A stretch of 63,854 nt of DNA, counting the filler, from Klebsormidium nitens (lineage: Eukaryota > Plantae > Klebsormidiophyceae): the NCBI GenBank assembly GCA_000708835.1. It is 7 parts of 7 records of this genome, joined end to end, with 100 filler letters (N's around TTAATTAATTAA, not from the genome) between each part and the next. Parts side by side here need not be neighbours in the genome. Positions count along the whole stretch, not along the records: positions 42,983 to 52,334 come from DF238199.1; 6 more parts are not named here. The stretch is one strand, 5' to 3'. Below, one piece after another: positions 16,240 to 52,543 of this stretch (its first letter is position 1; each line of letters starts with the position of its first letter). The notes beneath the pieces are model-generated. The model had not been told where the DNA came from. It made no database searches and saw nothing but the letters and a program-made list of their open reading frames with translations. Made by a program: the position numbers and the translations under genes.

Positions 16240-17573
16240 CCGAACACCTTTTGGTCATTTCCAATTCAAGGTCTTGATAGAGGGGTTAACTAGCGCTCCG
16301 GCGTCGTTTCAGACGGTGATGAACGACATCTTTTGAAAATACCTTCGGGATTTCGTGGTCGTTTATCTTGATGACGTCTTGATCTATTCTAAGACGCTTG
16401 AAGAACATCAGCGGCATGTGCGGCTGGTTTTGAAAGTGTTGCGAATAGAACAGTTCTTTGCTTGCAAAGCTAAGTCGGACTTTTGGAAGGACGAGATTAA
16501 GGTCTTGGGGCACATCGTCAGCGCGGATGGCAGTTGGGTGAACCCCGCCAAGGTGGCCGCCGTTGCCGATTGGCCGCCTCCAAAGAACGTCCACGAGCCT
16601 GGTACGTTCCTTCTTGGGGCTAGCTAATTATTTCCGCAAGTTTCTTCAAGGTTATGCGAAGCTTGCTACACCTCTGATTGATTTGACTAAGAAGTCGACG
16701 GTTTGGAACTGGACTGCAGCTTGTCAAGAGTCCTTTGAAGGGATTAAGTGGGCGTTAACGAATGCTCCTCTTCTGCGGTCACCTAGGTAGGATGTTCCTT
16801 TTGAGGTTGTGAGTGATCAATGCTTCGATCACTGGTTTAGGGGCAGTTCTTCGTCAGGACGGTCAACCTGTTGCTTTTGAAAGTCGAAAGCTCAGCCCGG
16901 TTGAAAGGAACTATACTACGACTGAGCAAGAATTGTTGGGAGTGGTGCACGCCTTGCAAGTTTGGCGATGTTATCTGGAAGGTAATGACTTCACGGTTGT
17001 GACAGATCATAACCCAAGTACCTATCTCCAGACACAGCCCTTGTTATCAAGGCGGCAGGCCCGTTGGAAGAAATTTCTGCAGAGATTTGACATTCAGTGG
17101 CAATACCGGCCTGGCCGGACTAATGTCGCTGATCCGTTAAGTCGCTTTCCGGTTGGTCCTGCCTTGGCCGTCATTACTCGGAGCTGCAGAGGTGTGGGTG
17201 GCATTCTCCGGAGCGGCCACTCTGACGCGATTGCCCCCTCCACAGCGCCTGCTAAAGGAAGTAAATCTGTCCTCCCAGATCTGGCCGACCCTTTGCGTGC
17301 CCAGATATTGGAAGCTTACTCCACGGATGCTTGGCTGCGAGATGCAAACAGTCAAAGCGTTCCACCACTGGAAGTTTCCCTTGAAGGGTTTTGGCTACAG
17401 GGCATCAAAATCATTGAGGTGCCGAACGGCTTAGGAGTTCGTGACTCGGTATTCCAAGATTTGCACGACTCAAAGTATTCGGGCCGATTTGGTGTAACTA
17501 AGACATTCAAGGCAGTGGATTCAGTCTTTTGGTGGCGCCCACGCTGAAAGCTGAATTCTTGCAGTATGTTCGT
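16240..17573 (+). pseudogene. pol: Ty3/Gypsy pol remnant of element A (RT C-half, RNase H, start of integrase)
   Basis: [80 protein letters not shown], and LHDSKYSGRFGVTKT..FWW. Stops and frameshifts present. Ends abruptly after YVR at ~17573. Confidence 0.92.
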
Positions 17574-17869
17574 TGAGATGTTGAGCTGGCTTGATTGAGT
17601 GTTCTGTGGTTGAGCTGGTTTTGAGATATATAAAAGGAGCTGGGTTGTTGACTTTTGGCTCACCTTGTCGGGGGGCAATCAATTAGTCTAGATACCTTTG
17701 CTGTTCACACTTTGGGCAGTTCTGGTTTTTGGTTTCTCATGTCGAGAAACAATCAGATATGCTCAAAGAAGTCCTGGTATGAGACACATGTTACATTGAG
17801 CTGGTTGGTGAACCTGTGACTTGGAATCATATGCTTATGTTCTGACGTGTTACGAACATCGCAGAATCG

Positions 17870-20800
17870 ATGGAGACTGAGGAGAAGCTTCAGGAAATTG
17901 AGCTTGGGGGTGATGTAGATTTTGCCGAGAGAGAGAGTGTTGCACATGAGAGAATCGATGAGTTGAATCACAAGGAGAGAGAGCTTGAGGTGCGGGAGCG
18001 TCAGCTCCAAGAGGTTTTGCATGAGAAGATTGTGGAGCAGCGCTTGCGTGAGCTCCAGGGTAAGAGTCATGTTTCAGCTGAAATGTCGTCCCCTCGTCAT
18101 GTTGAGACTTATTCCTTGCCAAAGGAGGATAGAGAGGTCCTGATGGCTGGTTTGCAACAGCAAATGACTGAGCAGCTTAAATCTTTCGGTGAAAGTCTAC
18201 TTGCCGAGTTGCTCCAGCAACATTTGGAGGTGCTTGTTACTCGTCCCGTGCTTTCAGTTCTGGTTGGCAGCCCGGCTGCTGAGGCTTCCGTTGCTCAAAC
18301 TTCTGCTTCCTTAGATGTGTCGGAATCTGGACTTATGGGAATGCAAACTTCTGGTGGATTTCCTTCTTTTCACCCTGGTTTGACTGCATCGGTGAGTCGT
18401 CCTGATGTAAGCGTTTCAATCTCATCAGGGAGTGTATTATCTACCTCGTCAGCGTTTGCATCTGGTGGTGCACGTGTGTCACAAGCTGTTGGTGCTTCCA
18501 GGGGGACATTTCCAGCCACTGCGGCAACCGGTTTTGGCTCAACCATATTTTCTGAGGTGCCGCCAGCAGTGACGTCAGCAAAGGATCCCCCCTGGCAGCC
18601 TGGTACTTCGTCGTTTGTGTTTGGGGCTCAGAACCCCGCATCGTCTACAACTCAATCTGTTCCTCAGTTTACAGGTCAAAATACTACTTATTCGTCCGGC
18701 TTTGCGAGTTACGAGGCCGCCGCTCCGTCGCCACAGGGTTTTGCTCAGAACATGATGTCCCCGGGCTTTTTCACACCTGCTTATGTCAACCCGGGTTTCG
18801 TCTCACCTATTCCGTCTCAGGGTGCTGGCTCACCCAACTTGCAGATTCTTCCGACTTTTGATGGCACAAGAAAGGGTCTGACTGCACGGTCCTGGCTGGT
18901 GACGGACCTTGAGCAGGTCCGTGCCTTGTACAATCTTTCGGACCAGAAGATGACCCCATTAGCTCGTCTGCGGTGTATTGGCAAAGCCCGTGACTGGGCA
19001 GAGATTCAACCTGAGCATCAATCTTGGGAGGAGTTCAAGTCCGCATTTCTGCTTGAGTATGGTGAAAAGAATCAGAACAAACTCTTCTTTGAGATGATCA
19101 ATCACACCCAGGATGACTCTTCTGTTGGTGAATACGCAACCACAATGCAGCGCTACTTTCGTCAGTTGACAAACGTGACCCCGGAAAAGCAAAAGGAATA
19201 CTTCGTCAGAAACTTAAAAATGGGTCTTCGTGAGAGTGTGTTTGCTGCCAGTCCGTCGTCCCTAGCACAGGCTATTGAGATTGCTCGTCGCGTTGAGGAC
19301 ATGTATGCAGCTTTGCCCGGCAAGCAGGAAGAGCCCGGCACTGAAATCCGTAAGCTTCGGAAGCAGGTTGAGCTCCTTTCAATTCAGAAGAAGCCTGCCC
19401 ACCTTCGTATGTTACCTCGTCGTGCACCTGGTCCTGCATAGCCTGCTATTCATAATTCTGGGCCACAAACTGACAACGGTGATGCAGGCGGCTTTGATCA
19501 AAGATGCCTGGCATGCAATGATCCTAACCACGTCGTCCGGAATTGTCCGAATCCTCCGAAATATCCGTACTTCTCTTGCTGTGGTTTCTGGCGCAGGCAC
19601 AGGGATGAGTGTCCCGAGCTCGGCAAGATGCAAGCAACACACGCTCAGAACTTCCTCGGTGCTAACATCAATTTCCTTGAGCCTAGTTCTCCGGATTCTG
19701 CAGGTCGCCCACCGGAGGAGATCGTTGCGTTCACTGACGATGAATCTGACGCCTCGTCTGACTCGTCTGGTTACGAAAGCTCTGACACAGAATCTCAAAA
19801 CTCTGATCAAGAGATCTTTGCAGGAAAGAGAAGGCGAGAACCAGAGCCAAGGCGTGAAGCGGAGGCACCGGGTGGCGCGAAAGCGCAGAAACGTGACGTC
19901 AACCAGCTTCCTCGCAAGCGTGAAGCCGTAAAACCCGTCTTAAATCCTCTTTCTGCAGAAGAGAAGCAAAAACGGAAGAAGACGCGTGAGCGCAACCGGG
20001 AGATCAATCGCGAGACCAACCTCGGAATCATCCGTTCACTGCTTAAGGGTGTTCAACAAGATATTGCCGCTCATCGTAACCTGAAACATTTCCGCACAGA
20101 TCTGCATCACCACATCGACAAGATTCTCTTCCACAACCGGGAGGAGAAGAAGGCCGTCCGTCCGCCGAAAGTGGACAAGTCGTCAAGTTCGTCTAAGCCG
20201 CCTGAGTCTCTCTTCGCAGACAAACAATCCGAGGTGATCCCGAACTCGTCACAAGACAAGACACAATCGTCTTCCGAATCTCGTTACATGCACATCGAGC
20301 TTGAGCGTGGTTCGTATGGTCGGAAAGAATGGTATGACGTGCCTTCGTTTCCTCTTCGGACTCAAATCTTTGCTGAGGTTGAGGGCGTAAAAATGAGAGT
20401 CCAGCTTGATTCTGGTGCCACGTTTTCCGGAATCTCCCGGGAAGCTGTGGACAAGTGTGGTTTGGCCGGCAAAATCAAGCCGACCCGTATGACTTACAAA
20501 ACTTCGTCTGGTGAAATTCGTCCTGCCGAAGGCAAAGTCCGTGTGCACATTCAGGATGAGCGCCTCCGAGTTACTTCCACAATGCTCGTCATGCCTTACG
20601 GTTGTTCTTACAATCTTCTTCTGGCCAATGACATCGTCGGTCCCCTCACAGGAGATGTCTGTCGTAGCACAAAGCATGTGAAGTTCTTCTGGGCGGGGAA
20701 AACCATCCTAACTCCTTTGTTGCATGAGACGTCTGATGATGACGTCAAAGTCCGTGAGTCGTACTTTCTGACCGTCAACCAGTTGTCTTCGGAGTGCCAA

Positions 20801-42982: not shown

Positions 42983-43137
42983 TTGTACGAGAGAGGCACT
43001 TCATGACAACCGCTCAAGGAACCTTTGCTTCGGCAGCCATGGAGAGAGACGCCGGAGCGCAACACAACACTTGCTTGGATGGAAGGCGCCTCAAAGCGCT
43101 TCTCTTCTTAAAGGCTAACTTACAAAAGGTTGCTTAA
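42983..43137 (+). pseudogene. Possible hAT transposase C-terminal (dimerisation domain) remnant
   Basis: ERHF...HNTCLDGRRLKALLFLKANLQKVA* immediately after a gap. Resembles the ER.FS....R..L....L.LLFLK.N pattern. Confidence 0.35.
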
Positions 43138-43591
43138 GCAACCACAAAGTTCAGGAAGTCCCAAATTCGGGGCACTTCTCCTAAGTCCGTCAAGTGACGA
43201 CCACAAGTCTTCTAGGGTCTTCTAGGTACGACAGCCTGGTAACGACCCCTTGGTAGCGACACCTATGACATCACAATACTTCTAGGGACTTCTAATGACC
43301 ACATCCGACCTCTGGTTTAACCATACCAACAACTAGGTCGGGCTAAAAGCCGTCCACAATACTAGCAATAACAATAGTCTATTGTCAACTATTACCAATC
43401 ACTAGCAGTCATTACCGCTTCGGCTACATGTTCCCCCGGCAGACAGCTCCCGCCGGAATTGGAGGCAAAATCCTTCCTCCGGCGTATGTACAGTGGCCAT
43501 CGAAGGGCCATATATAGCTTTGTGATGATTTGTGTGGGTTTGTATTAGACAATCAATCGATACATGCTTGCATCGGCGGTACGGCAAGGAC

Positions 43592-44173
43592 CTAGTACCG
43601 CACGGCATGCTCAATGGGGCCATTGCCCCTCTCAAAATCTAGACCATTACCATGGCGAGCTGAAGCATGATTAAGTGGTGTAACAAATGCCCCGCCATTG
43701 CGGGGACTCGGGGTGGCGTCCCTTTCACGCCTCCCTGACAAAAGATTCCCTCGCATTATGTCATGCACAATTACATTGCCTGCATCATCAGCTGTGGTAG
43801 TACCATCATGGTTACCACCTAAATCAGCCATATCCTTACCCTGGGGAAAGTTGAGGCGCCGCTTCACAGAGACCCGAGGAGACGTTGGTGGGGATGGTGT
43901 GCGGCAACGTTTGGGTGCTACCACCCCTTCGTCTTCAGCGTCACTAACCTCAAGGTCAGAGAATGTGTCGTTGTCGTCAAGCGGGTACCAGCTTGGACCG
44001 GAGTCCCACGGGGAGCAGAGATCCTGCTCCGGCTCCTGCCACAACCTCAATGGAGTAGGCCCGGGACTGGCTGGGCACGTTGGGGAAGGCGGCCGAGGAG
44101 AGGCGCCCATACAAGCGAACTTCTGCAAGAATTCTAAGAGGCGAGTTGGAAATGAAAGTTTCCAGCTCGCCAA
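43592..44173 (-). CDS. Low-complexity hypothetical ORF divergent from the kinase gene
   Basis: 193-aa ORF with Pro-rich, acidic and KRCRTP..KRRLNF segments. No family recognised. Confidence 0.35.
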   Translation of the reverse strand: MASWKLSFPTRLLEFLQKFACMGASPRPPSPTCPASPGPTPLRLWQEPEQDLCSPWDSGPSWYPLDDNDTFSDLEVSDAEDEGVVAPKRCRTPSPPTSPRVSVKRRLNFPQGKDMADLGGNHDGTTTADDAGNVIVHDIMRGNLLSGRRERDATPSPRNGGAFVTPLNHASARHGNGLDFERGNGPIEHAVRY

Positions 44174-44642
44174 TGCACTATTTATACTAGTGACTTACAG
44201 GCTACGCAGGATTATTAGATTTATTCGAAAGTCTTATCGAACTATTCACCACTATTATCGCACCTGCACCTATTCGATAATAGTCTACTCCTAGACTCAG
44301 GCTAGAGGCTAGAGGCTAGAGGCTAGTAGTCGAGCAGCTCTAGCGCCTTCCATTGTTTAGCACCATTCGCCCCAAGGATAGAGATCATCATTCTTCCTCT
44401 TCCTCTCGCTAGCTTTTGGCAGTCTAAAATGTTGTGGCGCTGCTCAGGTTTGAGTTAACACACGTCCTTTACTTCTACAGCAAAGTGAACCCTACAGCTA
44501 GCTCAAATTTAGCCTTCTGCAATGGCCTGTAGGGTTTTAAGTTTCCATGAGATTTGCTGACCAAGTAACTTAGAGTTTTTCAAATGTCATGGCATTGCCG
44601 TGCGGCTTATTCACTTTTCAACCACCCTTTTAGCGCTAGGCT

Positions 44643-47600
44643 ATGGCGTCCGGTTCTCGAACCCTACATTTGACGAGGAAACAGTCCGCTGGGCGCCAAC
44701 GAGCGTCCTCTCTAGGCTTTGTGTTGGCCTGCATAGTTTTGGTGGGATGCACAAGTGTAGCAGGTAGAAGTATTGACAGGGCCGCGCACTTTGCAAGCAG
44801 ACGGGACGACGAGAATGGCAACAGCAATAATAACAACAATAATAACAACAACAATAACAATAGTAACAACAAGTGCTGTATGGGCCAGCTTGGGCTGTCA
44901 GCAGATACATGCAAGGAGGTGAGGGCTCTTCCTTTCCTTTTTTTGGATAATGCTTCTTAGAATCGTTGGTGGATACTTGCTCTAACTCTAATAGGATCTC
45001 AGGGTTCCGTGATTCTGCACTGGAAGAGGGCATTGTGAGATGGTAGTAGTTCTGGTTGTGAAAATGCCGCTTGTAAGGGAACTTTTCAGCCCAGTCTGCT
45101 TAAGAATGTGCGCGAGAGTGAGTGCCTCTTGCTCCACACTGTTTATCGGGCGCAAAGCATTACTTATCTGTTCCGTTCAGATCTGGGCACATAGTATTCT
45201 GTCTGCGTCTCTCTTTTCAACCTTTTCCTATCTGGTATTTCCATACAAACTACCTTCGTAATCTACGTTGTGACATATTCTTTGTCGATGCAGAAAGGCC
45301 CTCTTATGAACCTCGTATTATACTTCCTGACTTTCTTGAAATTTCAGCTTTCGAAACTCCCTTCAACTGTATCCTCCTGGAAGAATTGTGTTGACATGGT
45401 ATTCCCTGATTGGTGAAGTTTTGCTCTGGCTGGTTCGTACCAACAGGAAAGTCAGCTCATACTTGAAAGGCACTGTAGAGTAAGTATGGCCTCTTACAAT
45501 GCGGGCTTTCCCATTAGGATTGCAGAATAACGCACCTGGAGGATATACCGGTCAAATGCAATGTCCATGTTTCTTACTCATCAAAGAGAAAGCTGTCAAT
45601 TCAAAACGACAGGGCTCATGCAAAAGTACTGTCCCAAACAAGCTCAGGAAGTCATTTTTGTCCTGTCAATCACACACTTTGTTCCCATCTTTCAGGATTG
45701 CAAGACCTTCTGTGTGTGCACGTCAGACAGATGCGATGTGCAGAGCTGCCCTCCCGGGACGCTTTACAACGTGGGCATCGCAATTTGCGACGCTGCTTCG
45801 AACGTGGCGTGCGGGAAAGACGCGAAACCCACTCCTGCACCAAAAGTTACGCCTGCCCCAAAAACACCAAACACACCCGCCCTAGTTGTCCCCAGCCCAG
45901 TTGCAAGCACTCCGGTGCCGACTCCAGTGTTAACCCCGGCCCCGACACCTGTCCCTCCTGCTCCGACAGCTGTCACCACTTTTGCGCCGACACCTGTCGC
46001 CACTCTCGCGCCGACACCTGTCACCCAGGCGCCAATACCTGTAACACCGGCGCCAACTCCAGTTCTCCCCACTGCAACGCCGGTTTCCCTTCCAACGCAG
46101 ATTGTTGTGGCCCCAACCGCCACGCCAGTCACTGTTGCGCCGACGGCCACTCCTGTGCGGACAGCTGGCAACCCCGCAAACCCCACCTTAACCTCGATTC
46201 CCACGAGCACCACCCCCATTCCGAGTCCCTTGGTGGTGTTGCAAAACTTCACTTTGTCCCCAAGCGTCAATGTTACGATAAACCCCCTTTCTAACCTAAC
46301 CATAACCCCCTCCTTGAACCTATCAATCTTTCCCGTCCTGAATTCTTCAATCGCCCCTGGATCGAACGCCAGTACAAGCACAGCCATCATTCTCCCCCCC
46401 GGTGCAAACGGAACTTTGGGCAACATAACGACCACTTTGCCAAAGCAGACTGATCCTCCAGCAGCAAGAGACAAGGGGGGGTCCAACACAGGGGTCATCA
46501 TTGCGGCCGTCGTGATTGTGGTGATTGTAGTGGCGCTTATTGCGCTGTGCACGGTTCTCTGTTGCTGCTACCGTCAGAGAATAGCTGTCGCTTGGGGGCG
46601 CCGAGGAAAGGGTTCGCTCTTCAAAGGAGGTGAGGTGCCGGCCCTTGGTGTTGCTTTATTTTTGGAAGCGTTTCCCTTCATGAAAGTGTGAAACCAGCTG
46701 CCCTAGTCTTGTGGGCGATTCCTCTTTGTAACCCATAGGTCTGATGAGACTTGAGCCTGTGCTTACATGGGAAAGCTAAAACATACCACCTTCCAAGTTG
46801 CTTATGTACCGACCCGTTTGGAACCAGGTTCGGTGGATGTTCAGCCGCCACCTTTCGAGCCTGCTCGCTAGCACTTTTGATATCTGGACGCTGCGAGCAC
46901 CTCCAAGGATGCTCTTCCACTGGAATGCCTTGAATCTTTGCCAGCTACACTTATCCGAGATTGCACATGTCCAAAGCAGTGCGGTACAGTTGGGTCGCAA
47001 TAGAACCCAACGGCACCAGGTCAAAACCTGAAATCTCCCTCCTTTCCAGGTCGCGAGCCTCGCTTCGTGCCCTTCGCCGCCGCCCCAAGCGCGAGCCACT
47101 CAACCCCGTCGGTCACCGCTAACCCGAACCGAAACCCCGTCCAAACCCCAGCAGCCCCACCCAGCGCGGCCGCGGGTTTCTCGAAGGTGTACCCGTTCTC
47201 GTACCAAGATATCCAGAAAGCGACTTCGAAGTTTTCGGAGGCGCATTTGTTAGGAGAGGGGGGTTTCGGGATGGTTTACTACGGGCGGTTAGCGGATGGG
47301 CGGGGGGTGGCCGTCAAGAAGGCGACCGCGGGCAGGCGGGAGACGCAGGAGCAGTTCAGGAATGAGGTCAGCTGTTGCTTGTTGACTTCATGAAGCGTCT
47401 CCGGATCAACATCAGCTGCTTATGATAAGGTTGCCGGGTCTGATCCGTATGGGGTTCCGTCAGGATTCTCAGGTTTGGTTCTTTCACAGTGCTACAGTGG
47501 GTACTCTATACTGCAGCTTGGATGGCTTCGCAAAATACCTGGGGGCCTGCTGCAAGAGTGGTGCTTTCAAGCTTTCGGGACATCTGCGAGTACGTTCTAT

Positions 47601-50600
47601 TCAAGTTTGCACACCAGAGACTTCGTACCTTTTCCAACAGATGGCCGTAGAGACTGGATTCCCACTGCAGAGCTGGTTCACTCGAGCCCTGACCGGTGGT
47701 TGGGAGCCTGGCCCAAAACCCAAAATGCAAGGCATACAGAAACTCTCGAATTTCGATAACGTAGAATTTCCTACACCTTGCAATGGTTAGGTCGTTCTTG
47801 AGCTGTGGTTGAGTATCTTAGAACCCGAATTTTTCACCCTGTGAACACCTGAACCCCTCGCAGGTGGACTTCCTGAGCCGCGTGCATCACCGGCACTTGG
47901 TCGCGCTATTGGGCTACTGTCAGGAGGGCGGCGAACAGATGCTCGTCTACGAGCTGATGCCGGAGGGATCCCTCTCCAACCATCTCTACGGTGAGTGCCT
48001 CTTTCTTCTCCGTTCTGTGCTTGACACGTCCATCGTCTTTTTACTGCTGCTCTTTGTTTGTGGGCGCTTATTGTACAGGCTTGTGCGCCTTCCGGGCGGC
48101 CAAGCATGTCACCTGTATCCGTTCCAAAGCTGAAAAGTGATGTACCGTTGAATGATTGTTCTAAAGCCCAAGCAAGCGGAGAAGCCCAAATTCACGGCGA
48201 CCGTGCAACGTGTTCCCCCTGTAGTGAGGAGTCAGTCTGCATCATCCGCTTCGAATCGAGGCCTTTCGTTGCCCTCCACCATCATCTTCGCGCACTTATC
48301 CAAACTTAAGCGTTTTGAAGATAGGTTAAGGATTGCGTTGCTTCTTTAATTATTCTACCACCCCCGGCGTGTTCTCTGAATGGCGGCACCGTCCACTGGC
48401 TGCAGGGAGGGGCGACCCGTTGACCTGGCAGCAGCGCATGAAGATCGCCCTCGGCGCTGCACGGGGCCTGGAGTACCTCCACGTGGGTGCGCACCCGGCG
48501 ATCGTCCACCGGGACGTCAAAACGGACAACCTCCTGCTGACAAAAGACTTCGACTGCAAGGTGGGCGGATGCCGTCACAGCTTGGGTGTGGGGATGACTT
48601 CACAGCTTGGGTTCGGGGCTTAAATCGAGCATCCGCGCTTTGCACCGCTCAATGTCGTCAAGCGTTGGAGGTTTGGAAGGGTTGGTGAAGTGAGAGAGGA
48701 TACTGAGAATGTTGCGTACCAGTCTAGAAATACGTTCCGCCTGACCGCTGTTCTTATTCTGCTCTGGCCTTGTGGACCAGTCTAATGCGGATAGATGCAA
48801 GTGACCTCGTAGACAGTGAGTCTTATTTTCGGAGGGCGACTCTTTCACACGCAGCAAACGGGAAAATCCAACCTCCAAAGCGCAGCAAGGAATTTCGGTG
48901 AGGAGGGGACGAACTTCTGCCGCGTCCTGATGAATGCAAGAGCTCTGGGATCACTCCCATTCTTGATGTGATTGCTTCTCGATGCTGACAACGGCTGTAA
49001 AAGCCCCGGTTTTAAAGCTCCTTTTTGAAACGCTCCATTTTCTATTGTCAGGTCGCAGACTTCGGGTTATCCCGGCTGCCCTCAACCCAGGGAACGAGCG
49101 TCTCTTACGAGACGATGCCGTCAGCCGTGAAAGGAACCTTAGGTTGGTCGCCAATCTCGTCCAACTCGGTTCCCTCCTCGTTCTCCTCCAGTTTCTTCCT
49201 TTCTGCTGATGGCTCCTGTCTCTTTCTTGACCCGTAGTTGTCAGCAACTTCTGCCTGCAGCAGAACAAATGGATGGATCACCCGTTTACCAAGCTGCTAA
49301 CTAGCTGTCACGCGCAGCAAACCCAAGTTCCTTTGTTGTCCTGCTTAACGTGAAACGTTGCTTTGCAACCGATTGGCCGTGTGTTGTTGCGCCACATCTT
49401 GATACGTGCACGCTGATAAATTTGCTGTCAGCTGCCAAGAACGAGAAACGAAGCGCATTCGCCCGCAGGTTACTTGGACCCCGATTACGTCACGGGGAAC
49501 CCGATCACGACCAAGAGTGACGTGTACAGCTTCGGCGTGGTCCTGCTCCAGCTGGCCTCCGGACGTCCGGCGATTGACATGCGGTCCGGGTCCGAATGCC
49601 GATCGCTTGTCGATTGGGTGAGTGTCTTCTGCCGTTTCTCAGCATTTGTGGCGCCTTACAGGAATTGTCCCTGGAGCAGATTTGCATTGCCTTGATTGAT
49701 ATAGCCTTGCGTCGAAGTTTCTTCAACCACTCATTCAACCAATCAAATGGCGAGTGGCATTTGGACTTGAACCGCAGGGCTGACCTAGGTCAGGCCATAA
49801 GGAGCGGAAGAATTGGACTAGAAACCACATAGAAAGAAAAGTCTCCGTGCTGATACTTCTGTTCTTTCACAATAGGCCGCTCTTCGGTCAATTCGGTGGT
49901 CTACTCGGTGATAAACACAGCAAAGCTACCCATTTGCGGAACCCCGAGTTGGCACTTTTGAAAGCCCTTTTGATGCGCTGGGTTCAAATTCGTACTCTGG
50001 TCGAGTTGTTGCTTTTTGCGTCTCTTCTGCAACTGCTTTTCATTGAAGTCGATCAACACTCACAAAAAAGCACGATTTTCCCGTTCAGATTGTCAGCTGC
50101 CCGGTGTCATGCTGACGGAAGTCGGGTCTTTCACCAATTATGAGTGCTTCCGCTTTTCGGCACATACCCCTGTCCCTCTACTGAAGACTTAAGTTTCACC
50201 CGCTTCCATCTTTGCAGGCCCGGCCGTTCCTCCAAGCTCAGAACTACGGCCCGGTGATGGACCCCCGGCTGCACGGGCGCTTCTCCCGTGACGACTTCGC
50301 GCAGCTCTGCGCGCTCGCGGCCGCGTGCGTCGACCGGTCGCCCCTCCGCCGGCCGTCCATGACCGAAACCGTCAGGATTTTGGAGGTCTTAGAGAGCGCC
50401 GCGCGCCTAGCCGACGCAGCGCCGGCGCTCGGCGGCGCGTTCCACGCGCTGGGGCTCGGGAAATTCTCGCCGGGCGCGAGCTCGAGCGAATCATTTTCGG
50501 GGGGGAGTTTTGCGGGCGCGTTTGATGGGGGGCACGGCGTGACTTCGTCCCCGGGGGGGCGTTCTGCCGGTGCGTTTGAGGGGGGTAATGGAGTTTCAAA

Positions 50601-50769
50601 CGGGTCGGCGGTTCCGTTTGTGAGACGGTATGAGTGGAGAAGTGGGTCGTCAACGCAGAGCGGAATGCTCTCGAGTCGGCCGCCGAGTGACGGGTCGGGG
50701 CGCCGGGATATGGAAAGTTTTTCGGGAAACCTCGGAGAGCTGACGGTCTCAGAGGTGAATCCCCGGTGA
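44643..50769 (+). CDS. Receptor-like kinase (RLK/Pelle, RD type) with CBM14-type chitin-binding ectodomain, Pro/Thr stalk and TM helix
   Basis: Exons 44643-44918, tentative 45447-45479 and 45526-?, then 45696-46629, 47050-47366, 47864-47990, 48406-48560, 49052-49142, 49469-49617 and 50218-50769. From 45696 onward all are joined by phase-compatible GT-AG introns. Motifs: [93 protein letters not shown] and RRPSM. TM segment [22 protein letters not shown]. Confidence 0.93.
44819..44872 (+). repeat. AAC/AAT microsatellite encoding poly-Asn in kinase exon 1
   Basis: Run of AAC/AAT codons giving [16 protein letters not shown]. Confidence 0.9.
45696..45812 (+). other. CBM14/peritrophin-A (ChtBD2)-like cysteine domain
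   Basis: [39 protein letters not shown] has C-x5-C-x9-C-x12-C-x7-C spacing with DC..F, CP.GT.(Y)N, CD and V.C. The first Cys is probably in HCRNNAPGGY on upstream mini-exons. Confidence 0.8.
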
Positions 50770-52543
50770 GGTGGACCGGGCAGACGACGAAGAGTTTGTT
50801 TGATGACGGTTTGGAAGGCCCGCCGGGTCATCGCAAACCGGCTGGTCGAACGGGGTTGACACGGCTTGAAAGCAGTGCCCGGTAAACTCCACTGAGGCAG
50901 TCAACAGGAACACACCCTTGCATGAGCGGCTGTTGAACGGGCACTCGAGGCAGAGCTCATCGGCCAGGAGCGCTTTCGGTGATCTCAAAACGGGCGGTTA
51001 ACACTGAACGAAATGTTCTGGAGTTCCCGCCGGTTGTGAAGTACTCGGCAGGCGACTCGACGAGAAACACCGCATTGATTGCGCCGCAAATCGGCGAGGC
51101 TTGCTCGCCGTTCGGCCGCTGTTGAGGCAGAGCGAATATGCATGGGCCCGCTTCGGGTCAAGCGAGCAAGTCGACGTTCTCAATATGCCCTCCACGACTG
51201 TGACCAGCGGGTCATGGTCCTGCACCACCGGAGACTGGCGCCAGAATGTCCAGCTCGTCAGACTCGGCCTCTGCTTATGTTCCTAACTTATTGCTCTAGG
51301 CAGGCAAGAGGAAAAGTAGTGAACTAGATAGGCGAGTCATCAATTTTGGAGTTAGTAGAGAGGAAGGGCTAGCTAGGTGTTTCTTAGTCAAAGGTTTGGC
51401 GGAAGACGCCTAAGCAGCAAAGCTAGCAAAGGCACGCGCGTTGCTGAGTTCGTAGGGGTCGGAGGCTAGCTGTCAGGCACGCCGGAAGATCTAGGTATAT
51501 GAGTTGAGCGAGCAGTCCTCTTAAACTTTTGGTAGTTGTTTAGTACGGAGTGAAGTGATTCATACAGAGTCACGTTTTAGTTTAGTTGGGCGTTGATTAC
51601 TCTGGTGTCTGTTAGAGAGCGCAGCGCTTGCGCGTGTTAGTCTGGGCGGCTCAAGTTCGAGCAAGCCTGAACCCTGTTCATTTGCGCAAGATTTTTCCAG
51701 AAGTATCCATATCAACTCAACAGGTTTGACATGAAGTGCCGTGTCTCTCCATTTGAAGAGTCCACACCGCACAGTAGACACAAATGGTTGTCCTGCAGTC
51801 ATATGAGTCAAGCTGGTGAAAGACAAGTAAGGCGTGGTACATCGTTTGGTGCTAGATTCGAGTCCCTCAGAGTCAAAGGCTACTTGGTGAATCTTCTGGC
51901 TACACTAGCTCGCGGTTGGCATATGCCTAGCTCAACAGGGACTCAAATGCTGCGCTTATAGGCATCTCCCAGGCCGGCCATCCATACGCGTGTATCATTT
52001 GCACAAACGTGCATGGCATCATGGCGGTGCATAGATGTTATGATGGCACCATGTATGCCCGGCCATATAGTTTTAGTTTTAGTTGATTTAACGTCGGTTC
52101 GGAGCCGTGGTCGGCTAAGTCGACGAATGTCTCTATTTACTAACTCTGCACTAAACTCGCTCTTAATGCAAAGCTTAAGTGCAAATACTTTCCTATCACG
52201 TAAGTATCTTGTAGACTAAGGAACGATCTCAAGTTTATCTCTCCTCTATCCTGAAAGATATATGGGAAGTCTATCCTGAGGTCAGTATACACTGGGCAAG
52301 TGAACACGAAGTGATGTTCGTCCTCTATTTCACGNNNNNNNNNNNNNNNNNNNNNNNNNNNNNNNNNNNNNNNNNNNNTTAATTAATTAANNNNNNNNNN
52401 NNNNNNNNNNNNNNNNNNNNNNNNNNNNNNNNNNCACCTCTGATCCTTTGGACGCCGCCGGTACAGAGGGCCAAGAATTGTGACCTTCAAACACAGTTCT
52501 TCAAATCAACCTTCAAACTTTCAACTCTCATTCTCTGACGGTC

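Follow-up and report, generated by a model that had tools for sequence, protein, structure and literature searches.

LysM receptor kinases are the known chitin receptors of plants. These proteins (CERK1, LYK5 and NFR1/5) carry a compact globule of three LysM modules as a small glycan-binding ectodomain, followed by a single transmembrane (TM) helix and a kinase of the receptor-like kinase (RLK)/Pelle family. In another class, the proline-rich RLKs (PERK, and those described from Klebsormidium and Chara), a Pro-rich ectodomain without any folded Cys-rich head is linked through a TM helix to an RLK kinase. The CBM14 module was found, in the sources we searched, in animal, fungal-effector and viral proteins only, and on no kinase or plant-lineage receptor; the animal proteins (peritrophins, cbd-1-like proteins, and chitinase and chitin-deacetylase modules) are secreted, usually multi-repeat and devoid of a kinase, and often pair CBM14 with Pro/Thr-rich linkers. 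Here we describe a gene of the alga Klebsormidium nitens in which a CBM14 head, a Pro/Thr-rich stalk, a TM helix and an RLK/Pelle RD kinase are joined in one transcribed unit, an arrangement proposed in an initial annotation of the DNA and now found conserved in two more genomes. The gene occupies positions 44643–50769 on the + strand of a window of 63,854 nt (seven joined parts of assembly GCA_000708835.1, filler included); all coordinates count along this whole stretch, and the part analysed, 42983–52334, comes from DF238199.1. Its product shares with the LysM receptor kinases the kinase type, the single TM helix and a small ectodomain of a glycan-binding family, but differs from them in its unrelated ectodomain fold, its long stalk and the lack of LysM.

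The hand-built model, when translated, comprises eight exons and 866 codons, and its open reading frame (ORF) is uninterrupted from the ATG at 44643 to the stop codon at 50767–50769, with all seven introns bounded by GT..AG. The features of the gene are as follows.

44429–44642, + strand: 5′ leader, covered by transcript contigs, with five short upstream ORFs (uORFs).
44643–44918, + strand: exon 1, with the start codon, a signal-peptide-like region (residues 1–41), a poly-Asn tract (residues 59–76) and the cysteines C78, C79 and C90.
44919–45695, + strand: intron 1, 777 nt, phase 0, GT..AG, interrupting the CBM14 module.
45696–46629, + strand: exon 2, with the CBM14 core, the stalk, the N-glycan segment, the TM helix and the start of the juxtamembrane region.
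45696–45812, + strand: CBM14 (peritrophin-A/ChtBD2) core, residues 93–131, seven Cys, matched by PF01607.
45813–46205, + strand: Pro/Thr/Ala/Val-rich stalk, residues 132–262 (37 Pro and 29 Thr in 131 residues), with AP/TP dipeptides.
46206–46478, + strand: membrane-proximal N-glycan-rich segment, residues 263–353, with eight N-x-S/T sequons.
46488–46565, + strand: TM helix, residues 357–382, from hydropathy.
46566–46629, + strand: end of exon 2, where the intracellular juxtamembrane region starts; the next intron is in phase 1.
47050–47366, + strand: exon 3, juxtamembrane region and kinase N-lobe, with GEGGFG at residue 472 and VAVK at residue 490.
47864–47990, + strand: exon 4, kinase subdomains III–V (PF07714, 30.4 bits; PDB matches to PBL2, a lectin-RLK and FERONIA).
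48406–48560, + strand: exon 5, catalytic loop HRDVKTDN (RD kinase).
49052–49142, + strand: exon 6, DFG motif and activation segment.
49469–49617, + strand: exon 7, GYLDPDY (APE-equivalent), subdomain IX and DVYSFG.
50218–50403, + strand: first part of exon 8, end of the kinase C-lobe with subdomains X–XI and RPSM.
50404–50769, + strand: second part of exon 8, Gly/Ser-rich tail (residues 746–866) with a conserved end motif, and the stop codon.

The gene was found in 20 public sequencing runs from seven studies. The seven predicted introns are all excised at the exact sites in transcript contigs from four runs, each belonging to a different study, and, because such spliced contigs arise from RNA alone, it is clear that the gene is transcribed. 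The transcript link between the CBM14 exon and the kinase exons, on which the initial annotation had made its reading depend, was found in four independent studies, each with exon 1, the CBM14 exon and kinase exons on single contigs; the 2771-nt contig of run X15 starts upstream of exon 1 and ends in exon 7. Mini-exons had also been suggested at 45447–45550, within intron 1. They are not used, since 44918 is joined straight to 45696 in four runs from four studies, and the missing first cysteine of the module, which had been sought as well, is supplied by the end of exon 1 (C78, C79, C90).

The head of the protein was identified by several independent searches. The Pfam model PF01607 (CBM_14) matched the first 39 residues of exon 2 at profile positions 14–53 with 28.8 bits (E 1.4e-6), above the curated gathering cut-off of 22.1 bits, so that the module predicted for the ectodomain stands up to the profile search. 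With the exon 1/2 junction included, the match spans profile positions 5–53 of 53, and therefore the first cysteine of the domain comes from exon 1, where the candidates C78 and C79 lie 14–15 residues ahead of C94. The cysteine spacing that had been read from the DNA is exact for residues 94–131 (C94-x5-C100-x9-C110-x12-C123-x7-C131, together with CPPGTLYN and CD). Altogether the head (residues 78–131) contains ten cysteines, which are the six of the CBM14 framework plus four extra ones.

When the PDB was searched with phmmer, only CBM14 proteins were returned, namely EHEP (8IN3, E 2.5e-5), tachycitin, chitinase CBM14 modules and a squid beak chitin-binding protein. A HMMER search of 1.84 billion representative proteins with exon 2 gave 93 matches, whose best alignment in nearly every case falls on the head (query residue 1 to residue 50 or so); the top nine, when scanned with Pfam, each held 7–15 CBM_14 repeats, and those top matches with a named organism came from animals (molluscs, insects and a hemichordate). 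Animal CBM14 repeats are 28–44% identical to the algal head and have DC-x-(K/T)-F, QSC-x-PGT-x-FN, CD and NV-x-C in common with it. An AlphaFold (AF2) model of that part of the head which exon 2 encodes, computed from a 72-sequence alignment, shows four strands with a mean pLDDT of 78.7 (82–89 over residues 1–40). Ranks 1–12 of a Foldseek search of the PDB with this model are all CBM14 proteins (EHEP, Avr4 of two fungi, tachycitin, Der f 23 and CHIT1), with TM-scores by query of 0.50–0.69, probabilities of 0.80–1.00 and E-values of 0.08 or above, and the fold matches in the ESM Atlas are arthropod CBM14 proteins (TM-score 0.70–0.74). We accept on these grounds that the head belongs to the CBM14 family and has its small distorted beta-sandwich fold, as in tachycitin, Avr4 and CHIT1.

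Word searches with single exons turned up ORFs of exon size on unannotated eukaryotic contigs and led to three relatives of the gene.

L001, a 113-kb JGI metagenome contig (3300060284): an intact 802-aa gene with the same eight exons and the same intron phases, exons 4–7 being also of the same length.
L003, a Logan contig of SRR23617307: a closer copy, intact over 794 codons to the contig end, with the same eight exons and the same intron phases.
L002, an ENA contig (ERZ23789742): exon 3 only.

PF01607 matches both full homologues above the cut-off (31.5 bits in L003, 35.7 bits in L001). The ten head cysteines align in the three genes, and the seven that are encoded by exon 2 are identically spaced; the position of intron 1 is also common to all three. 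Between the K. nitens gene and L001 the exons alone can be aligned and synonymous sites are saturated, with 64% identity in the head (33 of 50 positions when counted over the head alignment) and 79% in the kinase. Against L003, the number of synonymous substitutions per synonymous site (dS) is 0.44, and the ratio of nonsynonymous to synonymous substitution (dN/dS) is 0.27 in the CBM14 head, 0.37 in the Pro/Thr stalk, 0.30 in the N-glycan segment and 0.08 in the kinase. Purifying selection acts on the ectodomain as a whole, with the head, and the architecture is an old one.

These data also bear on whether the gene could be an artefact, that is, a chimeric assembly, a mis-joined model, a pseudogene, or a case of animal contamination supplying the CBM14 exon. 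Such an origin would fit the finding that the 1.84-billion-protein library holds no protein with this ectodomain, the K. nitens product included. Yet single transcript contigs from four studies span exon 1 to the kinase exons at GT..AG sites, the same collinear gene is present on two genomic contigs from unrelated data sets, and the ORFs are intact with dN/dS below 1, and we therefore consider an artefact very improbable indeed.

From the structure of Avr4 with (GlcNAc)6 (GlcNAc, N-acetylglucosamine), it is known that Avr4 Trp100 and Asp102 are essential for binding, with Trp100 making the main CH–π contact, and that Pro451, Leu454 and Trp465 of CHIT1 are crucial and align with Avr4 Pro87, Leu90 and Tyr103 (PMC6128652). 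The corresponding positions of the three algal genes were compared with those of the 70 nearest animal CBM14 repeats.

Residue after Cys5-Asp (CHIT1 Trp465/Avr4 Tyr103): Ala in K. nitens, Ala in L003 and Thr in L001; in the 70 repeats, W in 30, F in 22, Y in 8 and H in 5, never Ala or Thr.
Residue before Cys5 (Avr4 Trp100): Ile in K. nitens, Asn in L003 and Ser in L001; mostly V or I in the 70 repeats.
Asp after Cys5: kept in the three genes; D in 70 of 70 repeats.
Pro of CP-x-G: kept in the three genes; Pro111 of K. nitens corresponds to CHIT1 Pro451 and Avr4 Pro87.

The Cladosporium fulvum Avr4 and human CHIT1 structures (6BN0, 5HBF; among Foldseek ranks 2–12) have the same fold as the algal head and share with it the CP-x-G proline and the Cys5-Asp pair, but their decisive residues (Avr4 Trp100, and Avr4 Tyr103 or CHIT1 Trp465) are not conserved in it. 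An aromatic W, F or Y follows Cys5-Asp in 60 of the 70 nearest repeats and in none of the three algal genes, which suggests a non-classical site; together with the four extra cysteines, this sets the algal head apart from its animal relatives. The only aromatic residues of the head are F97 and Y116, at positions that are F/Y and F/Y/W, respectively, in 70 of 70 repeats, and by inference from this conservation these two are probably core rather than surface residues.

The initial annotation had proposed a LysM-independent receptor for chitin or other glycans. LysM is indeed missing, as PF01476 gave no match in exons 1 and 2 at E up to 10, and a receptor of this kind would sense chitin or chito-oligosaccharides of fungi, chytrids, oomycete-like parasites or arthropods, with the kinase triggering defence. 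In its favour, the head is a true CBM14 by profile, sequence and fold, it retains the binding-loop consensus CP-x-GT-L-(Y/F)-N, Cys5-Asp and SNV, and Pro111 stands where CHIT1 Pro451 and Avr4 Pro87 stand. It is the chitin part of the proposal that has been weakened, by the Ala/Ala/Thr at the CHIT1 Trp465 position, where neither residue occurs in the 70 nearest repeats, by the Ile/Asn/Ser at the Avr4 Trp100 position, and by the two remaining aromatics being presumably buried. We consider such a defence receptor rather unlikely, and chitin as the ligand, judged from these residues, would be possible but not favoured.

The closest PDB match of the head by both sequence and fold is EHEP of Aplysia kurodai (8IN3/8IN6), a CBM14-type protein that was solved with tannic acid and not with chitin. 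This '25 kDa polyphenol-binding protein' likewise has Ala after the Cys-Asp pair in its first domain; it is a secreted three-domain mollusc protein with no stalk, TM helix or kinase, unlike the algal gene. Our best explanation, which we hold tentatively and just short of even confidence, is a single-pass RLK/Pelle receptor whose CBM14 head binds an extracellular polymer in a manner different from the classical chitin site and signals to the RD kinase. The ten-cysteine CBM14 disulfide knot would sit at the tip of a Pro/Thr/Ala stalk of about 220 residues with an N-glycan-rich base; the stalk is probably O-glycosylated and would hold the head out in or beyond the cell wall. There the head would most likely have a glycan of the wall or surface as its ligand, a phenolic polymer being another possibility, and would bind it by a non-classical site; its engagement or displacement may be passed to the RD kinase through clustering or dimerisation, as in other RLKs.

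The missing exposed aromatics, which would be expected for carbohydrate binding, could also mean that the head does not act as a lectin. In that case it may be a stable disulfide knot for protein contact, be it in dimerisation, with a co-receptor or with a secreted ligand (peptide or protein), or the mere anchor of a mechanical wall-integrity sensor resembling Wsc1/Mid2. The yeast Wsc1/Mid2 sensors, too, have a Cys-rich head of carbohydrate-binding type, a long glycosylated Ser/Thr/Pro stalk and a single TM helix, and by this analogy with fungal wall-stress sensors, as well as by the constraint on the stalk itself (dN/dS 0.37), a non-lectin head would gain some credit. They differ from the algal protein in having a WSC head (the algal gene gave no PF01822 match), a short tail in the cytoplasm where the algal protein has its kinase, and an unrelated lineage. 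Moreover, the loop CP-x-GTL(Y/F)N...CD-x-ASNV-x-CGK is conserved beyond the need of a bare scaffold, with 33 of 50 head positions identical to L001 despite saturated dS, and so we regard a non-lectin head as improbable, a shade more so than the chitin-triggered defence receptor.

Several points weigh against the binding of a polymer at a non-classical site. To our knowledge, the characterised CBM14 domains all bind chitin, with the exception of EHEP, and for this reason chitin is still a live candidate. The head dN/dS of 0.27 speaks of constraint without stating its purpose, and much of that constraint could come from the cysteine framework by itself. The structural model spans the exon-2 part of the head alone, and its Foldseek E-values are weak, because the domain is tiny (about 50 residues). 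Glycosylation of the stalk is likewise assumed from its composition.

The ectodomain set of the modular plant receptor kinases defines what a plant cell senses, and here an expressed receptor kinase retains its CBM14 head in no fewer than three genomes, one of them so remote that synonymous sites are saturated. Should its ligand be a glycan, the head would represent an independent solution to glycan sensing beside the LysM, malectin, lectin and WAK types, and would give access to the ways in which algae detect parasites or monitor their own wall. With a ligand of another kind, it would be, next to EHEP, the second case in which the CBM14 fold has been put to new use on a ligand other than chitin.

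No earlier description of the architecture was met, in line with the initial annotation: literature searches for CBM14 (also as peritrophin or PF01607) in connection with receptor kinases or with algae yielded no account of a CBM14 receptor kinase. Among the top 20 matches of one such search, peritrophin was paired with a streptophyte term in none, the Zygnema genome paper mentions neither CBM nor chitin, and in a green-algal cellulase paper CBM14 appears as a comparison only. A 2024 review lists only LRR (leucine-rich repeat), Pro-rich, extensin, C-lectin, LysM and malectin types among charophyte RLK ectodomains; surveys of this kind would probably have counted the gene as 'proline-rich', and the CBM14 head is a new ectodomain variant on a known receptor class.

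No protein combining CBM14 with a kinase was present among the 93 matches of the protein search, which is weak evidence for absence because in that library a single CBM14 that has diverged, with a score of about 30 bits or less, goes unseen; the product of the K. nitens gene is itself not in it. Metagenome scans with the head alignment and with the exon-8 alignment gave no further copies, a viral-contig scan with the head alignment gave no viral relatives, and querying the ESM Atlas by features produced no match that could be used. The best single-repeat matches to the head are animal repeats, at 29.8 bits or less, with no close viral relative. Domain capture, as suggested initially, is a plausible origin of the head. 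In its boldest form, a proline-rich RLK would have gained a CBM14 of animal or viral type that came from beyond the green lineage, and algae related to land plants would have obtained a receptor for chitin or a related GlcNAc polymer that is lineage-specific and independent of LysM; we find it doubtful that chitin perception was invented independently in this way.

Hydropathy peaks at residues 21–41, a signal-peptide-like hydrophobic stretch, and at residues 357–382 give the protein the layout of a receptor, with signal peptide, ectodomain, single TM helix and cytoplasmic kinase. The TM helix reaches a Kyte–Doolittle mean of up to 3.6, is followed by basic residues, and is also kept in L001 and L003. 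At its cytoplasmic end lies a Cys-Cys-Cys cluster (residues 381–383; 46560–46568), a candidate S-acylation site, which is represented by CC in L003 and by CCC plus another CC in L001. By analogy, the layout of the protein is like that of PERK-type receptors, with which it shares a Pro-rich ectodomain, a TM helix and an RLK kinase. In contrast to the PERKs, the stalk has no Ser-Pro3-5 extensin motif, nor was one found in the L001 protein; its coding DNA contains a 24-nt tandem repeat at 45942–46025. The equivalent of the N-glycan segment has six sequons in L001 and a similar set in L003. Within the K. nitens segment, six sequons (NFT, NVT, NLT, NLS, NSS and NAS) stand exactly 8 residues apart, the first and last at residues 276 and 316 (46245–46388, residues 276–323). 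This 8-residue repeat is kept in L003 and mostly missing from L001, and the program TRF sees no repeat at the DNA level. Just ahead of the head, a (CAA/AAC)n repeat at 44819–44872 encodes the poly-Asn run, which has another length in L003, is missing from L001, and looks like a dispensable low-complexity insertion when the three sequences are compared.

The kinase (residues 456–745) agrees with the intact, spliced RD kinase of the RLK/Pelle family that had been predicted. Its motifs GEGGFG (472), VAVK (490), HRDVKTDN (586) and DFG (606) are all present and are the same in L001, and the kinase exons are matched by PF07714 and PF00069. In PDB searches made exon by exon, plant RLKs and receptor-like cytoplasmic kinases came first (BAK1, FERONIA, PBL2, SYMRK, lectin-RLK, CERK1, BRI1 and CARK1-type), followed by animal IRAK4 at about 10–20 bits lower per exon, with no solved subfamily prominent. 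These matches place the kinase, as far as its sequence indicates, in the plant branch of RLK/Pelle. Its motifs HHRHLV and LVDWARP, which we take to be PERK-like, serve as a lead only. In the tail, the last 24 or so residues (50695–50766; 10466–10537 in L001), starting with RDM, are shared with L001, the rest of the tail having diverged; this end motif has no Pfam match and, from its conservation, may be a docking or regulatory motif.

Intron 5 (48561–49051) is retained in contigs of all four runs, and the main 2771-nt contig of run X15 is among those retaining it. Read-through would add 20 residues and then meet a stop codon ahead of DFG, yielding a kinase-dead, membrane-anchored form or a target of nonsense-mediated decay; contig depth gives no quantification of this form. 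At 49548, in exon 7, contigs of X9 and X15 diverge into sequence coding for a typical RLK segment, and the bin 49360–49559 has 3–10 times the depth of the other exons. This divergence is probably an assembly cross-over with paralogous RLK transcripts that share the conserved stretch.

As for the surroundings of the gene, a 193-codon ORF without a Pfam match lies upstream on the − strand (43592–44173); flanking ORFs in 42983–52334 gave no Pfam matches, and the same part gave no Rfam matches. The L001 contig carries, some 7 kb downstream of its copy of the gene, an ORF (17511–18323) that resembles a Ty3/gypsy capsid (PF19259, PF03732). On the K. nitens side, transcript contigs extend at least 195–235 nt upstream of 44560, and the transcribed leader holds five uORFs of 8–29 codons (44429–44673), with ATGs at 44429, 44522, 44547, 44584 and 44589. 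One of them, the uORF that begins at 44584, runs across the main ATG in another frame, a hint of translational control.

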